A DNA stretch of 62,997 bases, the filler included, from Octopus bimaculoides (taxonomy: Eukaryota): the NCBI RefSeq assembly GCF_001194135.2. It is 6 parts of 6 records of this genome, joined end to end, with 100 filler letters (N's around TTAATTAATTAA, not from the genome) between each part and the next. Parts side by side here need not be neighbours in the genome. Positions count along the whole stretch, not along the records: positions 5,366 to 21,749 come from NC_068982.1; 5 more parts are not named here. One strand, written 5' to 3'. The notes beneath the pieces are model-generated. The model ran no database searches and had not been told where the DNA came from. It saw nothing but the letters and a program-made list of their open reading frames with translations. The first letter of the stretch is position 1. Each line of letters opens with the position of its first letter. Positions 10,721-18,579 of this stretch are shown here, piece by piece. The position numbers and the translations under genes were made by a program.

Positions 10721-10726
10721 TTTATT
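10721..10726 (-). terminator. Polyadenylation signal AATAAA of the secreted-protein gene
   Basis: AATAAA on the minus strand about 40 nt after the stop codon. Confidence 0.6.
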
Positions 10727-10764
10727 TCAATCGATGACCAACAATAAAGAGTATACACAATAAT

Positions 10765-10965
10765 TTAAAAGAAACTTTCAGGTTCAAACATTTCTTGGGC
10801 GGCTTTCATAGCCTTTTCTTTAACATCGGCTCTCAATCTGTTCAATACAGTTGGATTGGGTCTGAAGACCTTTGATTCATACAATCCTCGGATTCCACTG
10901 GCATCTTTTTGAACAAATAATACACGGTTGCTTCTCCTGTAGGCGAACAACTGGATACGGAAGAG
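10765..10965 (-). CDS. Exon 5 (terminal) of secreted protein (LFRIQLFAYRRSNRVLFVQKDASGIRGLYESKVF...EPESFF*)
   Basis: Acceptor ttcgcttcag|, 201 nt ending in TAA; the five exons total 864 nt = 287 aa plus stop. Confidence 0.9.
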   Translation of the reverse strand, partial: LFRIQLFAYRRSNRVLFVQKDASGIRGLYESKVFRPNPTVLNRLRADVKEKAMKAAQEMFEPESFF

Positions 10966-11426
10966 CTGAAGCGAATTAAAAATAGGAATTATATTTTTGG
11001 CTTTTAATATCTGCTATTATTGCAAGATATTCTGTTAGTGTTATTGCTTTCTCATCGCGTCTAGAATTGGCAATAGCAGTGTAAAGAGCTCGGTTCTTCT
11101 TTATAAACTGTTTTTTCTAACTTTTACTAGTAATCAGTAATAAGTATTAAACATGTTTACGAATCCAAACTAACTTTTTCCGAGACTAAATGATATAGTG
11201 TTTAGGAGCATTATTCTCGAAGATCATCGTAAATATACTTATGACATTTGCTGTCGACCATTAAAGATTGAAAACAAGAAATATCATCACGTTAAATATT
11301 CATGAAATATATAGTTTTAAAGTGAATTAAGTTGGTCAAAGAACGGGTCCATATAGTTGGCGTTTGTTACATGAAAATAAAATATTATTTTCGTCGAATT
11401 CTACATAATGAAGATATGAAACTTAC

Positions 11427-11648
11427 CTTGAAGAAAGGATGTTCTGGATCAGGGTATCGGATGACTCCTACATCGACAACACTACGTTCCGCATAATCGT
11501 TTTTAATGATAAGTGATTCCAAATTGTCAACAGTTGCACCGGTGAGACCCACAATGTTTCCAAAATCAACGATATCAATTCTGGTGGCAGCCAAAATATC
11601 GGCGTCTTTGATGAGATCATTTGCAAACCATTCAGCTACTGCATCAAC
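11427..11648 (-). CDS. Exon 4 of secreted protein (VDAVAEWFANDLIKDADILAATRIDIV...VDVGVIRYPDPEHPFFK)
   Basis: Acceptor ttcttctctaag|, 222 nt, donor |gtaagt, phase 0-0; overlaps ORF 11385..11693. Confidence 0.9.
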
Positions 11649-11956
11649 CTTAGAGAAGAAATGAGAGACGGAATTGACAACAATATATACCAAATTATTA
11701 GCACTTAACTCGATTTGGCGTTCCGAGTGACATAATTTACAAATTTAAAGCAATGAAAAATAAACTGCAAATTAATTTCTAAAGTTTCTAATGGATACGC
11801 GTTAGGCATCAACCCTAATTACCTCTCTGTACATTATATTGTTATTAAATAGTCCTGAAGTTTTGCCTCCTTCTATACTCAATAAGGCATTATAGAATAT
11901 AGTTGAGCATACATGAATACGTGATTTTTGTTGCTAAAATTTTGGCTAGGTAATAT

Positions 11957-12165
11957 ATTCTTTTCTACTCTAGACACAAGTCCCGAAATCTTGGGGTAGG
12001 GCTAGTCAATTACACCGAACTGAGTACGCAACTTAATTCATCGCCCTCAAAAGGATGAAATGTAAAGTCGACCTCGGTGGAATTTGAACTCTGAACGTAA
12101 AGACAGACGAAATACCACTAAGCATTTCACCCGGCATGCTAACGTTTCTGCCAGCTTGTCACCTT
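11957..12165 (-). mobile_element. SINE family A (intronic)
   Basis: Reverse complement of the family A consensus. Confidence 0.8.
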
Positions 12166-12384
12166 GGCTAGACAATATATGACATCACACAAAGCATTAG
12201 CGGGTACATAGCTACATTTCTGAGATCGCATCCCATCAGTTACTATTTTAGATCTGTACCCAAAAAGAGATATTTTGATTTCACATGCCAACAATATTCA
12301 AACTATTATTTCTAGATAAGAGACTTCTCCAACAGTGGAAAATAAATTCGCTTCTTGTCAAAGTAATACTAAATAAAGAAATTA

Positions 12385-16192: not shown

Positions 16193-16425
16193 GATTTGAC
16201 TGCGGCCATGCAGGAGCACCGCATTTCGTCGAGCAAACTGACACCACTACTTATTCTTTGTAAGCCCAGTAATTATTCTATCAGTGTATTTTGCCGAACC
16301 GCTAGTTATGGGGACGTAAACACACCATAATCGTTTGTTAAGCGACGATGGTGGAGGGCAAACACAGGCATACAAAAGCATACATGTGTATATTTACGAT
16401 GGGCTTCTTTCAGTTTCCGTCTACT
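16193..16425 (-). mobile_element. SINE family B (partial, intron 1)
   Basis: gatttgactgcggccatgcaggagcaccgc...ggggacgtaaacacacc. Confidence 0.75.
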
Positions 16426-17604
16426 TTGGTACTTGAACAAATTTCCACTGGATACTTTATAGAAACTCGATGAGTGAAAGATATTCTTAGCTTAGTAAAG
16501 GCATTTTTCAGAAAGTCCTTACAGTAGCATACTCAGATCAAATTAAATAGATCCTTGCTTATTCCATGTATAGAATTTTCCTCTTGACTTTCTACCTGTG
16601 AGCCTGAAGAAAATATTTCTTAGCAAGTGTTGATATTGGAACGAAAATTTAACGTTCGCTGTGAAACACAATGTTTTCTATTGTGCAAGCCAAAAGCGTA
16701 TATAAGAAAGGGTATAGGCTTTGACAGATAAGTCTAAACTATGTGTATGCAAAAACTCAGTTCAGACGTGAAGAATACTTACTCATCGAAACGATGTCAC
16801 TGACAGATGCTGAAAAAAACAGAAAAGAAAATGTCATCATTTGATAAATAACAATATTAACTTTTTTATAGATATATTTATTTAAAAGAAAACAATACAC
16901 ATGTTACTGTAAAAGAGAAATATATTTACTTCATATGAAATTGTCACTTTATCATTTCCAGCTGGACGTTGAGTGTCTTTTAACATAATGCACTTCATTG
17001 CTGATATTAGAACAACTGTCCAGTTTGAGAATGTAGTTTTCAGTCAGTCGCACAAGCTCTAAAACAATCATTGACATAGACCTTTCTTGATAATTGATTG
17101 CACAAACTAAGACCGGAACTAAAAGTGCTTTTGTACACAATTTCATGCGTTATCATTTTAAGAGAAAGTTAATATTTCATGCAATTTAGAGATTTATTTT
17201 CGGTTCTCTTGGAGCTGTAGAATGTGAATTACGACCGATTTTTTAACATTAATAAAAATGCTCGTTCATTCATATTGAATTCTATTAAATTCCATCTTAC
17301 GCAATATACAGTTTCTTGGGACCATTCACTTTGGCGATTCTTTTGGCATACTGTCTGCGAAAAAACGAATCTGATCCTGCTTTCCGACCAGCGATACCCT
17401 TGGCTCTCATAAGCACACTTATACCTTTAAGCGTTACTGATCACCAGAGCTAAGCGTTTCTAGCAGGGGAACACACCGGTAGCTCTCAATATTGAATTGA
17501 AACCTTTTCCTAAGTAAAACACCTTTACTAGCCACTGTGCTAGAATTAATTAAGACAAGGTCGTACTGTTATGCATGGTGTATCTCTTTTACTCTTTTAC
17601 TTGT

Positions 17605-17985
17605 TTCGGTCATTTGACTGTGGCCATGCTGGAGCACAGCCTTTAGTCGTGCAAATCGACTTCTATGACTTATTCTTTGTAAGCATAGTACGTATTCTAT
17701 CGGTATTTCTTTTGCCAAACCGACAAGTTACGGGGACGTAAACACACCACCATCGGTTGTCAAGTGATGTTGGGGGTGGGGACAAACACAGACACACACA
17801 CATATGCACACACACATGCACACACACATACATATATATATATACATATAATCGACGGGCTTCTTTGAGTTTCTGTCTACCAGTTCCACTCACAAGGCTT
17901 TGGTCGGCCCGAGGCTATAGTAGAAGTCACTTGCCCAAGATGCCATGCAGTGTGACTGACCCGAAACTATGTGGTTCGTAAGCAA
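17605..17985 (-). mobile_element. SINE family B (intron 1)
   Basis: Near full-length; closely matches 44785-45237. Confidence 0.82.
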
Positions 17986-18468
17986 GCTACTTTATTTTAT
18001 TTCGATTGGCCATTTAGGTCTTACAAAGAGGGGACAAACAAGGACAGACAGATATAAAGTAGCCACTCCTGCGCCTATCACGCAACTTTTTGACATTGGA
18101 CAGTCCAGCCAACTTGTAACCATTCGTCCTTCTTCATTAACCACAGAAAAAAATTGAACACTGAGGAAACGTAAAGTGCTTTAAGAGTAAATTAAAAGCA
18201 TTAGTTACGAGAGTAGCTCTATCTAATTCATAAAACGGAAATAATTTCGTCTTTTTTTTAAAATTCACATGAATTAAGTAATGTTTCTTGAAATAGAGAC
18301 TACAACTAAATTTTAAGGCATTTAGAAGTGTTTGATTCATTGTTTTCTATGATTTGATTCCGTTGATATAGGAGGATGAGTTTAACTGCTACTAAAATTC
18401 AAATTCCAATTTTTAATTTCAGCATTTCTTGAAATAAGAACATGTTAAATAGAAATGTTGATACTTAC

Positions 18469-18520
18469 CATAGCAGTATGCAATAGCGAAGAAGAAAATA
18501 ATAATTGCTTGAACCTTCAT
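18469..18520 (-). CDS. Exon 1 of an uncharacterised secreted 287-aa protein; signal peptide MKVQAIIIFFFAIAYCY(G)
   Basis: ATG at 18520; 52 nt encoding a basic-then-hydrophobic signal-like peptide; phase-1 donor G|gtaagt; TATATAAA about 55 nt upstream of the ATG; phase matches exon 2. Confidence 0.85.
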
Positions 18521-18571
18521 GATTAGAGATTGCAAGTGAGCAAGTGATGAGAAATCAGTCCCAGAAGCTAG

Positions 18572-18579
18572 TTTATATA
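18572..18579 (-). promoter_or_regulatory. TATA box (TATATAAA) of the secreted-protein gene
   Basis: About 31 nt upstream of a pyrimidine-rich Inr-like TTTCTCATCACTT (about 18548) and just upstream of the ATG at 18520. Confidence 0.65.

Follow-up and report, generated by a model that had tools for sequence, protein, structure and literature searches.

Gene structure at the locus

The window analysed here is a 62,997-nucleotide stretch of Octopus bimaculoides DNA (NCBI RefSeq assembly GCF_001194135.2), made of six parts from six records joined by 100-letter fillers, and all positions count along it. The part at 5,366 to 21,749 comes from NC_068982.1 and carries, on its minus strand, a gene predicted to encode a secreted protein, with the following features.

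18572-18579, minus strand: TATA box TATATAAA, 59 nt upstream of the ATG; CCTATATAA conserved in Octopus sinensis
18469-18520, minus strand: exon 1, coding part of 52 nt (MKVQAIIIFFFAIAYCY plus 1 nt); 96% nucleotide identity and same length in O. sinensis
16783-16809, minus strand: 27-nt micro-exon, (A)SVSDIVSM, phase 1 to 1, missed in the preliminary description; orthologous to O. sinensis exon 2 (L001 11109-11135)
15299-16118, no strand: assembly gap, wholly intronic and crossed by no reading frame; collinear flanks, ordered and oriented as in O. sinensis
13992-14179, minus strand: exon 4 (exon 2 of the preliminary description), 188 nt, LAKAK...ELQ; 94.1% nucleotide identity and same boundaries in O. 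sinensis
12901-13101, minus strand: exon 5, 201 nt; 94.0% nucleotide identity
11427-11648, minus strand: exon 6, 222 nt; P213 and R211 conserved among 94 family members
10765-10965, minus strand: exon 7 (last), 201 nt including the TAA stop at 10767-10765; 93.5% nucleotide identity
10721-10726, minus strand: AATAAA polyadenylation signal, 38 nt past the stop; conserved in O. sinensis

The preliminary description had proposed a complete five-exon gene for a 287-aa protein, and its exons are real. Each of the five minus-strand exons (18520-18469, 14179-13992, 13101-12901, 11648-11427 and 10965-10765) is flanked by AG...GT, and they join in phases 1,0,0,0 into 864 nt, or 287 aa, with no internal stop. 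The TATA box (18579-18572) and the AATAAA (10726-10721) are both conserved at the aligned O. sinensis positions, and a real, intact, TATA-driven gene is supported. Exon 1 encodes a predicted signal peptide only, with a hydrophobic N-terminus, and ends in phase 1; the block formed by the promoter and this exon is 91% identical to O. sinensis. In terms of the structural model described below, exon 5 encodes helices alpha1-alpha2 and the long strand 117-135, exon 6 encodes helices alpha3-alpha4, the first long C-terminal strand and an invariant R-Y-P-D loop, and the last exon encodes the final two long strands and the C-terminal helix. The mature protein has the one cysteine (C58, C16 being part of the signal peptide) and the two N-glycosylation sequons (NLT66 and NIT101) attributed to it. 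Elsewhere on this piece, a search for other ORFs, Rfam families and repeats returned only microsatellites.

The five exons have the exact lengths and boundaries of exons 1, 4, 5, 6 and 7 of an O. sinensis gene, and their nucleotide identity to that species is 93.5-96% compared with approximately 83-91% in the surrounding non-coding blocks; the five-exon structure is far beyond chance. The O. sinensis product (304 aa) is 85% identical to the window protein by BLASTP and 90% in alignment, with dN/dS of 0.42, and is listed as 'uncharacterized protein LOC115232471', in keeping with the earlier view of the protein as unnamed. Exon boundaries are shared and the 20-kb neighbourhood is collinear with the window, although the two copies belong to different octopod genomes (83-91% DNA identity) and one of the window's seven exons is unreadable owing to the gap. 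Together with LOC115232471, counterparts in Argonauta hians are the closest known proteins.

The claim of completeness did not stand, since the orthologue has seven exons (52/27/24/188/201/222/201 nt). The overlooked 27-nt micro-exon follows a polypyrimidine tract and CAG acceptor and precedes a GTAAGT donor (ttttttcag-CATCTGTCAGTGACATCGTTTCGATGA-gtaagt), and three of its four nucleotide differences from O. sinensis are synonymous. The 24-nt exon, (I)PDGPAGS(R), probably lies inside the assembly gap. The collinear flanks pair window 17584-16432 with L001 10341-11488 and window 15281-13942 with L001 14559-15860, and the O. sinensis exon (L001 14292-14315) stands 244 nt upstream of L001 14559, where the block resumes at window 15281; synteny gives a nominal window position of ~15525-15548. 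Scans of the readable intron sequence by peptide, regular expression and splice-flanked 24-mer did not find it. The locus is accordingly read as the orthologue of LOC115232471, a seven-exon gene with six exons readable and the 24-nt exon probably in the gap, and its full product is likely to be a secreted protein of ~304 aa. Confidence in this gene model, and in the family membership set out below, is high, and much greater than in any function.

Could the 287-aa protein nevertheless be the main product, with exon 1 spliced straight to 14179, past the two micro-exons? Their symmetry (phase 1 to 1 in each) means that the frame would survive their omission, and more distant octopod paralogues (P0004-P0007) lack the 17 residues in question. 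The O. sinensis orthologue and both Argonauta proteins contain these residues, however, and nothing disrupts the 27-nt exon, whose splice sites are strong and whose divergence is mostly synonymous; this form is improbable. Decay into a pseudogene, or an artefact of annotation, is a very improbable account of the locus: a search of the protein collection for this genome did not yield the exact protein and the gap leaves one exon unreadable, but the 891 readable coding nucleotides contain neither stop nor frameshift, all splice sites are canonical, the exons are more conserved than the introns, and the dN/dS value and the conserved promoter and polyadenylation signal point the same way. For annotation the lesson is how easily a pair of symmetric micro-exons (27 and 24 nt) escapes notice and how an assembly gap can hide one of them.

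A family with a patchy distribution

A profile search of 1.84 billion proteins returned 373 cluster representatives at E<=1e-3, 223 of them at E<=1e-10. The family is found in coleoid cephalopods, where there are several paralogues, and in Agaricomycete mushrooms, a fern, green algae (Acetabularia), chloroviruses and filamentous cyanobacteria. Named members come from octopods, Argonauta and Acanthosepion among the animals, from Trametes, Grifola, Schizopora, Mycena, Galerina and Leucocoprinus among the fungi, and otherwise from Ceratopteris, Acetabularia, ATCV NE-JV-2 275R, Microcoleus and Okeania. Profile matches range from E 1e-160 for the orthologue to 1e-45 for fungal, fern, algal and viral proteins and cover approximately residues 20-282. 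The core residues D76, W154, D162, G184, R211-x-P213-D214, P218, R224, G245 and P257 are all present in the window protein; among 94 family members P213 is invariant (100%) and R211 is 97% conserved. A signal-peptide-like N-terminus was seen in 13 of the 13 cephalopod members examined, in agreement with the signal-peptide first exon proposed earlier, and the impression that no standard domain is present was confirmed by the lack of any Pfam, NCBIfam or PADLOC match.

Protein 275R of Acanthocystis turfacea Chlorella virus NE-JV-2 (AGE56576.1; P0029) is a true family member (HMM E 3e-45), as are the proteins behind BFVD models M1I283 and M1HBT0, and superposition of the predicted structures is good (TMq 0.74, 32% identity for M1I283). 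These members differ from the octopus gene in being viral and intronless, and are likewise uncharacterised. The genes around one family member are of chlorovirus type, and a plasmid-like contig carries another. Scans of IMG/VR viral contigs gave no confirmed family loci with the patterns applied. In some related metagenomic proteins of viral type the N-terminus is hydrophobic and looks more anchor-like. The cyanobacterial neighbourhoods repeatedly contain an ECF sigma factor and a TPR protein; the ~400-aa ORFs next door, however, are mutually unrelated, and these neighbourhoods therefore give no functional clue. A patchy, mobile-element-linked spread, with cytoplasmic fungal and secreted animal forms, is typical of laterally spread toxin or defence proteins.

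Several identities were considered and rejected. For an EF-hand protein, EF-hand_1 scored 12.5 bits against a cutoff of 25.4 (E 0.11) on a single loop at residues 97-112; this sub-threshold loop occurs in only 3 of the 94 members, all closest orthologues, and its position 1 is E in the window protein and D in O. sinensis. The fern insecticidal protein IPD113 is an unrelated 526-aa Cry/PirB-like two-domain protein. For Flammutoxin/TDP, the Flammulina cytolysin, the comparison rests on the N-terminal peptide PQVKTSWEDLANLGWPIQQV (PMC10778570), which found no convincing match in 187 family proteins.

Predicted fold and resemblance to cytolysins

The AF2 model of the protein has a pLDDT of 85.9 and a pTM of 0.83; AF2 from only 8 sequences gave a pLDDT of 40 and was excluded from the fold search. 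In a Foldseek search of the PDB the top eight matches were exclusively Cyt1Aa, Cyt2Aa, Cyt2Ba and volvatoxin A2 (E 7e-5 to 1.2e-3, probability 0.97-1.00), with the next tier falling to ~0.1. TM-scores for these matches are 0.25-0.40, below the usual same-fold threshold of 0.5, with an rmsd of 10-12 A, and given this poor global superposition the match rests on local 3Di similarity and on the order of the elements. The model has helices at 77-96 and 104-112, a strand at 117-135, helices at 145-159 and 163-186 and strands at 198-211, 220-236 and 239-257, and by DSSP this order is identical to that of the cytolysin fold, alpha1-alpha2-beta1-alpha3-alpha4-beta2-beta3-beta4 (PMC5390079), with an extra N-terminal strand and helices and a C-terminal helix. 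The fold assignment, a predicted alpha/beta sandwich with the cytolysin order of elements, has moderate support. Strand alternation is visible at 220-229 and 246-257 and the hairpin tip at 230-245 is polar; the whole-strand beta moments of the three long strands were not above permutation (p 0.16-0.83).

Cyt membership by sequence was rejected and only a fold-level resemblance is retained. Even at E<=10, PF01338 matched neither the window protein nor any of 94 relatives, and hhalign, comparing the family profile with Cyt1Aa and with a Cyt profile of 8 sequences, gave probabilities of 0.2% and 0.1%, respectively. PDB sequences likewise gave no match, either to the protein sequence by itself or to the profile built from 94 sequences.

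The best structural matches, Cyt1Aa, Cyt2Aa and Cyt2Ba of Bacillus thuringiensis (PDB 3RON, 6T14, 1CBY, 2RCI; PF01338), share the helix-hairpin/strand order, ending in three long strands and a C-terminal helix, and are similar in size at ~250 aa. The octopus protein differs from them in its longer strands, extra N-terminal helices, eukaryotic signal peptide and introns. Volvatoxin A2 of Volvariella volvacea (PDB 1PP0, 1VCY; Foldseek E 5e-4, probability 0.97), a pore-forming protein with the cytolysin fold, comes from an Agaricomycete mushroom, and Agaricomycetes also carry the octopus-protein family, although the two proteins are only ~12% identical. Volvatoxin has a detectable sequence relation to Cyt1Aa (E 4e-4), whereas none is detected for the octopus family. 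The third cytolysin-fold clade, that of the Erwinia virulence factor Evf, was recognised by structure alone, and is therefore a precedent for sequence-orphan clades (PMC5390079). Evf (PDB 2W3Y) is absent among the Foldseek matches listed for the octopus model and, unlike the octopus protein, is a bacterial, palmitoylated gut-persistence factor. Evf is not known to form pores, and hence the cytolysin fold does not guarantee lysis.

Possible functions and competing explanations

Cytolysin-fold toxins are known in bacteria and a few fungi, and the fold is used in mosquito-control biopesticides. By its predicted fold and signal peptide the octopus protein may be a secreted, lipid-targeting, possibly cytolytic protein of defence or venom type, a proposal that is quite plausible while falling a little short of probable. 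In this fold a pair of helix hairpins would pack against a sheet whose last three strands are long and antiparallel. Once secreted, the protein would bind membrane lipid directly, the helical layers would swing away from the sheet, and the sheet would then insert or oligomerise to permeabilise the target membrane, in a role that could be defence, immunity or prey handling. A wider scenario, possible but doubtful, is that the family constitutes a fourth clade of the cytolysin (Cyt/volvatoxin/Evf) fold and acts in cephalopods as a horizontally acquired, membrane-attacking effector. It would have moved laterally among filamentous cyanobacteria, chloroviruses, green algae/ferns and mushroom-forming fungi, with a single capture by the coleoid ancestor followed by the gain of introns and a signal-peptide exon and by expansion to at least 5-6 paralogues.

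The same alpha/beta fold with its lipid pocket might instead belong to a secreted, non-lytic binder or carrier of lipids or small hydrophobic ligands, comparable to Evf or to Bet v 1/START-like proteins. Cyt-fold proteins have a fatty-acid pocket in common and Evf bears palmitate on a Cys (PMC5390079), the second-tier Foldseek matches are Bet v 1/PYL/START ligand binders, the long strands are largely polar, and a dN/dS of 0.42 is unlike the strongly diversifying pattern of many venom toxins. The Bet v 1-type matches, however, reach a probability of only ~0.06-0.2 and a TM of ~0.1, and a patchy spread on plasmid-like and viral DNA and in fungi with mushroom fruiting bodies is better suited to offence or defence, so that a non-lytic carrier seems somewhat unlikely. 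The Cyt likeness itself might also be spurious, in which case this would be a structurally new alpha/beta protein with an unrelated role, perhaps as a component of extracellular matrix, egg coat or adhesive, or as an enzyme built on the invariant R-Y-P-D loop. In favour are the low TM-scores, the high rmsd and the absent profile-profile signal, and we know of no counterpart in Cyt toxins for the most conserved residues of the family (D76, W154, D162, R211, P213 and P218). Set against this, the top eight PDB matches form one structural family at a probability of at least 0.97 before a sharp drop, eight secondary-structure elements occur in identical order, and no Pfam enzyme or matrix domain was matched; a chance resemblance is judged unlikely.

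The effectors that cephalopods use in venom, mucus and immunity have been poorly catalogued. In the literature searched the LOC identifiers of the family are unmentioned, no Cyt-like family is described in cephalopods or chloroviruses, and no report of an animal cytolysin-fold toxin was found. If both the fold and the membrane-permeabilising activity proposed here are true, a new family would be added to the toxins or defence proteins of animals, and a new sequence-orphan clade to the cytolysin fold. The spread of the family through cyanobacteria, giant viruses, algae, a fern, mushrooms and cephalopods would then be a striking example of genes shared between kingdoms. Should the fold match prove spurious, what is left is still a sizeable conserved family (373 representatives) without a name, Pfam model or known function, which therefore merits a family definition.

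The preliminary description had suggested a gland or epithelial product (posterior salivary/venom gland, skin mucus or egg jelly), traceable through its peptides in secretions. No tryptic peptides of the family were present in the O. vulgaris skin-mucus and posterior-salivary-gland supplements, a weak negative. Evidence for expression of the cephalopod family comes from a cuttlefish homologue of 304 aa, which is encoded by an uninterrupted ORF on ~1-kb contigs in eight sequencing runs, one of which is juvenile RNA-seq from Sepia esculenta.

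Exon structure and expression

The minus-strand gene had been put forward as complete with five exons, but its Octopus sinensis orthologue has seven, and a 27-nt micro-exon absent from the five-exon model is also present in the window. The rest of the preliminary description was borne out on direct reading: all five exons are bounded by AG and GT at every internal boundary, with phases 1,0,0,0, and join into an 864-nt CDS encoding 287 aa with no stop within. The TATA box and AATAAA are present and both are kept at the aligned O. sinensis positions, whilst the single Cys of the mature part is C58 (C16 lies in the signal peptide) and the sequons are NLT66 and NIT101.

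Features of the gene (exons of the five-exon model read directly from the window)
18579-18572, minus strand: TATA box TATATAAA, 59 nt upstream of the ATG
18520-18469, minus strand: exon 1 (exon 1 of the five-exon model)
16809-16783, minus strand: 27-nt micro-exon, ttttttcag/CATCTGTCAGTGACATCGTTTCGATGA/gtaagt, phase 1 in and out
15299-16118: assembly gap within intron 1 of the five-exon model
14179-13992, minus strand: exon 4 (formerly 2)
13101-12901, minus strand: exon 5 (formerly 3)
11648-11427, minus strand: exon 6 (formerly 4)
10965-10765, minus strand: exon 7 (formerly 5)
10726-10721, minus strand: polyA signal AATAAA, 38 nt past the TAA

The nearest relative is the O. sinensis 'uncharacterized protein LOC115232471' (P0001; 304 aa, 85% identity by BLASTP), in which, as in both Argonauta hians proteins, an additional 17 residues, SVSDMVSMIPDGPAGSR, separate the signal peptide from LAKAK. 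Searching the window with tblastn placed ASVSDIVSM on the minus strand, at 16810-16784, and the sequence at 16809-16783 is a textbook micro-exon. The exon structure of the O. sinensis locus (L001) was solved so that its translation equals P0001 exactly, giving seven exons of 52/27/24/188/201/222/201 nt, of which exons 1, 4, 5, 6 and 7 match the original five in length and boundaries. As far as the window's intron can be read, it holds no counterpart of the 24-nt exon (tag/TTCCTGATGGCCCTGCCGGATCAC/gtgagt). The gap at 15299-16118 lies in intron 1 and is therefore crossed by no reading frame. DNA synteny with O. sinensis is collinear over the whole piece, and because the gap flanks are themselves collinear with L001 (window 17584-16432 with L001 10341-11488, and 15281-13942 with 14559-15860), both the order and the orientation of the scaffold join have support. 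In O. sinensis the 24-nt exon sits 244 nt upstream of L001 14559, nominally window ~15525-15548 and within the N run; judged by this alignment, the gap very probably conceals one 8-codon exon. The true product is probably ~304 aa, and both this gene model and the protein's family membership are much more secure than the functional claim. Since both micro-exons are symmetric, the 287-aa form keeps frame and could occur as a minor isoform.

At the nucleotide level the exons are 93.5-96% identical to those of O. sinensis, with surrounding non-coding blocks at ~83-91%; the 27-nt micro-exon is 85% identical and three of its four changes are synonymous. Over 891 aligned coding nt, dS was 0.122, dN 0.052 and dN/dS 0.42, values that point to selection that is purifying but not tight. 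The reading frame of the cuttlefish-clade homologue P0173 (304 aa) is unbroken on contigs of ~1 kb from eight sequencing runs, one of them from a Sepia esculenta juvenile transcriptome study (PMC9538352); transcription and splicing are therefore established at the level of the cephalopod family, on this homologue. Family tryptic peptides were absent from an O. vulgaris skin-mucus proteome and salivary-gland study supplements, which is weak negative evidence on the earlier suggestion of a gland or epithelial product.

The O. sinensis interval matching the gap is ~1.9 kb longer than the nominal distance in the window, so the gap size is probably underestimated. Microsatellites, (AT)n and (TATG)n, at 7044-7088, 7477-7519, 16119-16153 and 5366-5402 adjoin two of the gaps, 7089-7476 and 15299-16118, as well as the piece's left end, and dinucleotide repeats were also read in translations beside a third gap (18957-19231); the assembly gaps are probably simple repeats left unassembled. 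Intron 1 holds two dispersed-repeat copies (17962-17642 and 16424-16222), both matching L001 13390-13701 at 74-76%, and the first (also 17992-17584) matches L001 4581-4966 at 78%; the repeat is probably an interspersed element of octopods. Downstream of the gene, 7866-8865 has a GC content of 0.44 against ~0.33, in a block that shares 83% identity with O. sinensis, and none of its 107-138-aa ORFs had a Pfam match. Elsewhere on the piece microsatellites were the only finding, with no further ORF with a Pfam match and no Rfam family.

A family across kingdoms

The protein was said to have no standard domain, and indeed Pfam, NCBIfam and PADLOC returned no match; the best Pfam hit, EF-hand_1, was sub-threshold (12.5 bits, cutoff 25.4). 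No sequence relatives were found in the PDB, and a word-indexed protein search gave seven matches only, all octopod. An exhaustive profile search over 1.84 billion cluster representatives recovered 373 at E<=1e-3, 223 at E<=1e-10 and 61 at E<=1e-30. Named members comprise several octopod paralogues (O. sinensis, O. bimaculoides, O. vulgaris, Argonauta), a cuttlefish protein (Acanthosepion pharaonis), Agaricomycetes (Trametes, Pilatotrama, Cubamyces, Grifola, Schizopora, Mycena, Leucocoprinus and Galerina, the last, P0161, with 42% identity to the octopus protein), a fern (Ceratopteris richardii), a green alga (Acetabularia), one 'Quercus suber' record and protein 275R of Acanthocystis turfacea Chlorella virus NE-JV-2. 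No Pfam family is common to members among the 94 compared.

Metagenomic member P0116 neighbours chlorovirus-type genes (Chlorovi_GP_rpt, SET, Polysacc_lyase_14), and the bacterial contig that carries P0015 is plasmid-like, with IS21, Mu-type transposase, resolvase and TrwC relaxase. IMG/VR scans yielded no confirmed family loci. When species-representative bacterial genomes were scanned, relatives turned up in Microcoleus sp. BROC3 and Okeania sp. SIO2F4, both filamentous cyanobacteria, in whose gene neighbourhoods no conserved partner was found. At both loci, L007 110-2757 (Microcoleus) and L008 4558-6551 (Okeania), the family gene has a TPR protein and an ECF-type sigma factor nearby; the directly adjoining ~400-aa ORFs are mutually unrelated, one having a weak class-3 lipase match. 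Metagenomic P0026 (322 aa), probably from another eukaryote, carries LDL-receptor class A repeats N-terminal to the family domain (Pfam E 8e-15), suggesting a receptor- or ligand-targeting module joined to the same core.

Predicted fold and candidate function

The evidence most favours a secreted protein from a sequence-orphan, laterally mobile family whose alpha/beta fold is cytolysin-like. AlphaFold with the 94-sequence alignment gave pLDDT 85.9 and pTM 0.83, and this model was used instead of one from 8 sequences only (pLDDT 40). The best eight PDB matches in Foldseek were all Cyt/volvatoxin (Cyt1Aa 6T14, 6T1A, 6T1C and 3RON, Cyt2Aa 1CBY, Cyt2Ba 2RCI, volvatoxin A2 1PP0), with E 7e-5 to 1.2e-3 and probability 0.97-1.00, after which the list falls to Bet v 1/PYL-type proteins at ~0.1. 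The modelled elements are H77-96, H104-112, E117-135, H145-159, H163-186, E198-211, E220-236, E239-257 and a C-terminal helix; the cytolysin order is alpha1-alpha2-beta1-alpha3-alpha4-beta2-beta3-beta4 (PMC5390079), and that predicted for the octopus protein is identical to this description. The model is also matched strongly by two predicted structures of viral origin, M1I283 (TMq 0.74, 32% identity) and M1HBT0, which we infer from accession style to be chlorovirus proteins.

On this favoured reading the protein would act on membrane lipid and serve defence, immunity or prey handling, a functional claim given a little less than even credence. The chief alternatives are that it has the same fold but binds lipid or a ligand without lysis, and that the fold match is spurious and the function unrelated. 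The latter gains from the low TM-scores to Cyt/volvatoxin (0.25-0.40; rmsd 10-12 A), which count against the fold match, and has against it the element order and the uniformity of the top eight matches. In the accepted cytolysin mechanism the helical layers swing off, the sheet binds the membrane and the pore is built from the last three strands (PMC5390079). The hydrophobic moment of the long strands, averaged over the family, gave no clear signal either way. Membership of the Cyt sequence family is ruled out, and the likeness is kept at fold level only: PF01338 was not found in the 94 members even at E<=10, and hhalign of the family profile against Cyt1Aa (sequence verified as 100% identical to 3RON_A) and an 8-member Cyt profile gave probability <1%. 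According to PMC5390079, it was through structure alone that the volvatoxin and Evf clades were connected to Cyt.

Two other candidates were set aside: the Flammutoxin/TDP peptide had no convincing match in 187 family proteins, and fern IPD113 is an unrelated, Cry/PirB-like protein. An EF-hand-like 12-residue loop, ENNKDGNITFNE (window 13059-13024, minus strand; residues 95-106), lies between model helices 77-96 and 104-112. With D at position 1 in O. sinensis it becomes the canonical D-x-N-x-D-G-x-I-x-x-x-E; it is below the Pfam threshold, occurs in 3 of 94 members and overlaps the NIT sequon, and may reflect lineage-specific Ca2+ binding or coincidence.

The O. sinensis gene was already known as a predicted, uncharacterised protein, and no paper was found that mentions the LOC identifiers or describes Cyt-like proteins of cephalopods or chloroviruses. 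The present analysis adds a corrected exon structure for the O. bimaculoides genome, recognition of a broad cross-kingdom family without name or model, and a putative fold-level link to the Cyt/volvatoxin cytolysins.

Secretion and paralogues

In a rough NJ tree all cephalopod sequences group in a single clade, which comprises five or six paralogue lineages at least and has the cuttlefish-type sequence nested within it; fungi form another clade and chlorovirus-type sequences a third. A hydrophobic, signal-peptide-like N-terminus was present in all 13 cephalopod proteins examined and is lacking in the fungal and cyanobacterial ones, so that secretion looks like a cephalopod addition via the signal-only first exon. 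The chlorovirus-type metagenomic proteins P0116, P0163 and P0165 have a hydrophobic N-terminal segment (MAAA...IDTVI...) resembling a membrane anchor or signal, whereas the named viral protein 275R does not.

Consecutive locus numbers and common chromosome-scale records (O. bimaculoides LOC106875293/4 and LOC106883829/30; O. sinensis LOC115212730, LOC115213384 and LOC115213439) suggest tandem clusters of octopod paralogues. The 16-kb piece of the window carries a single family copy.
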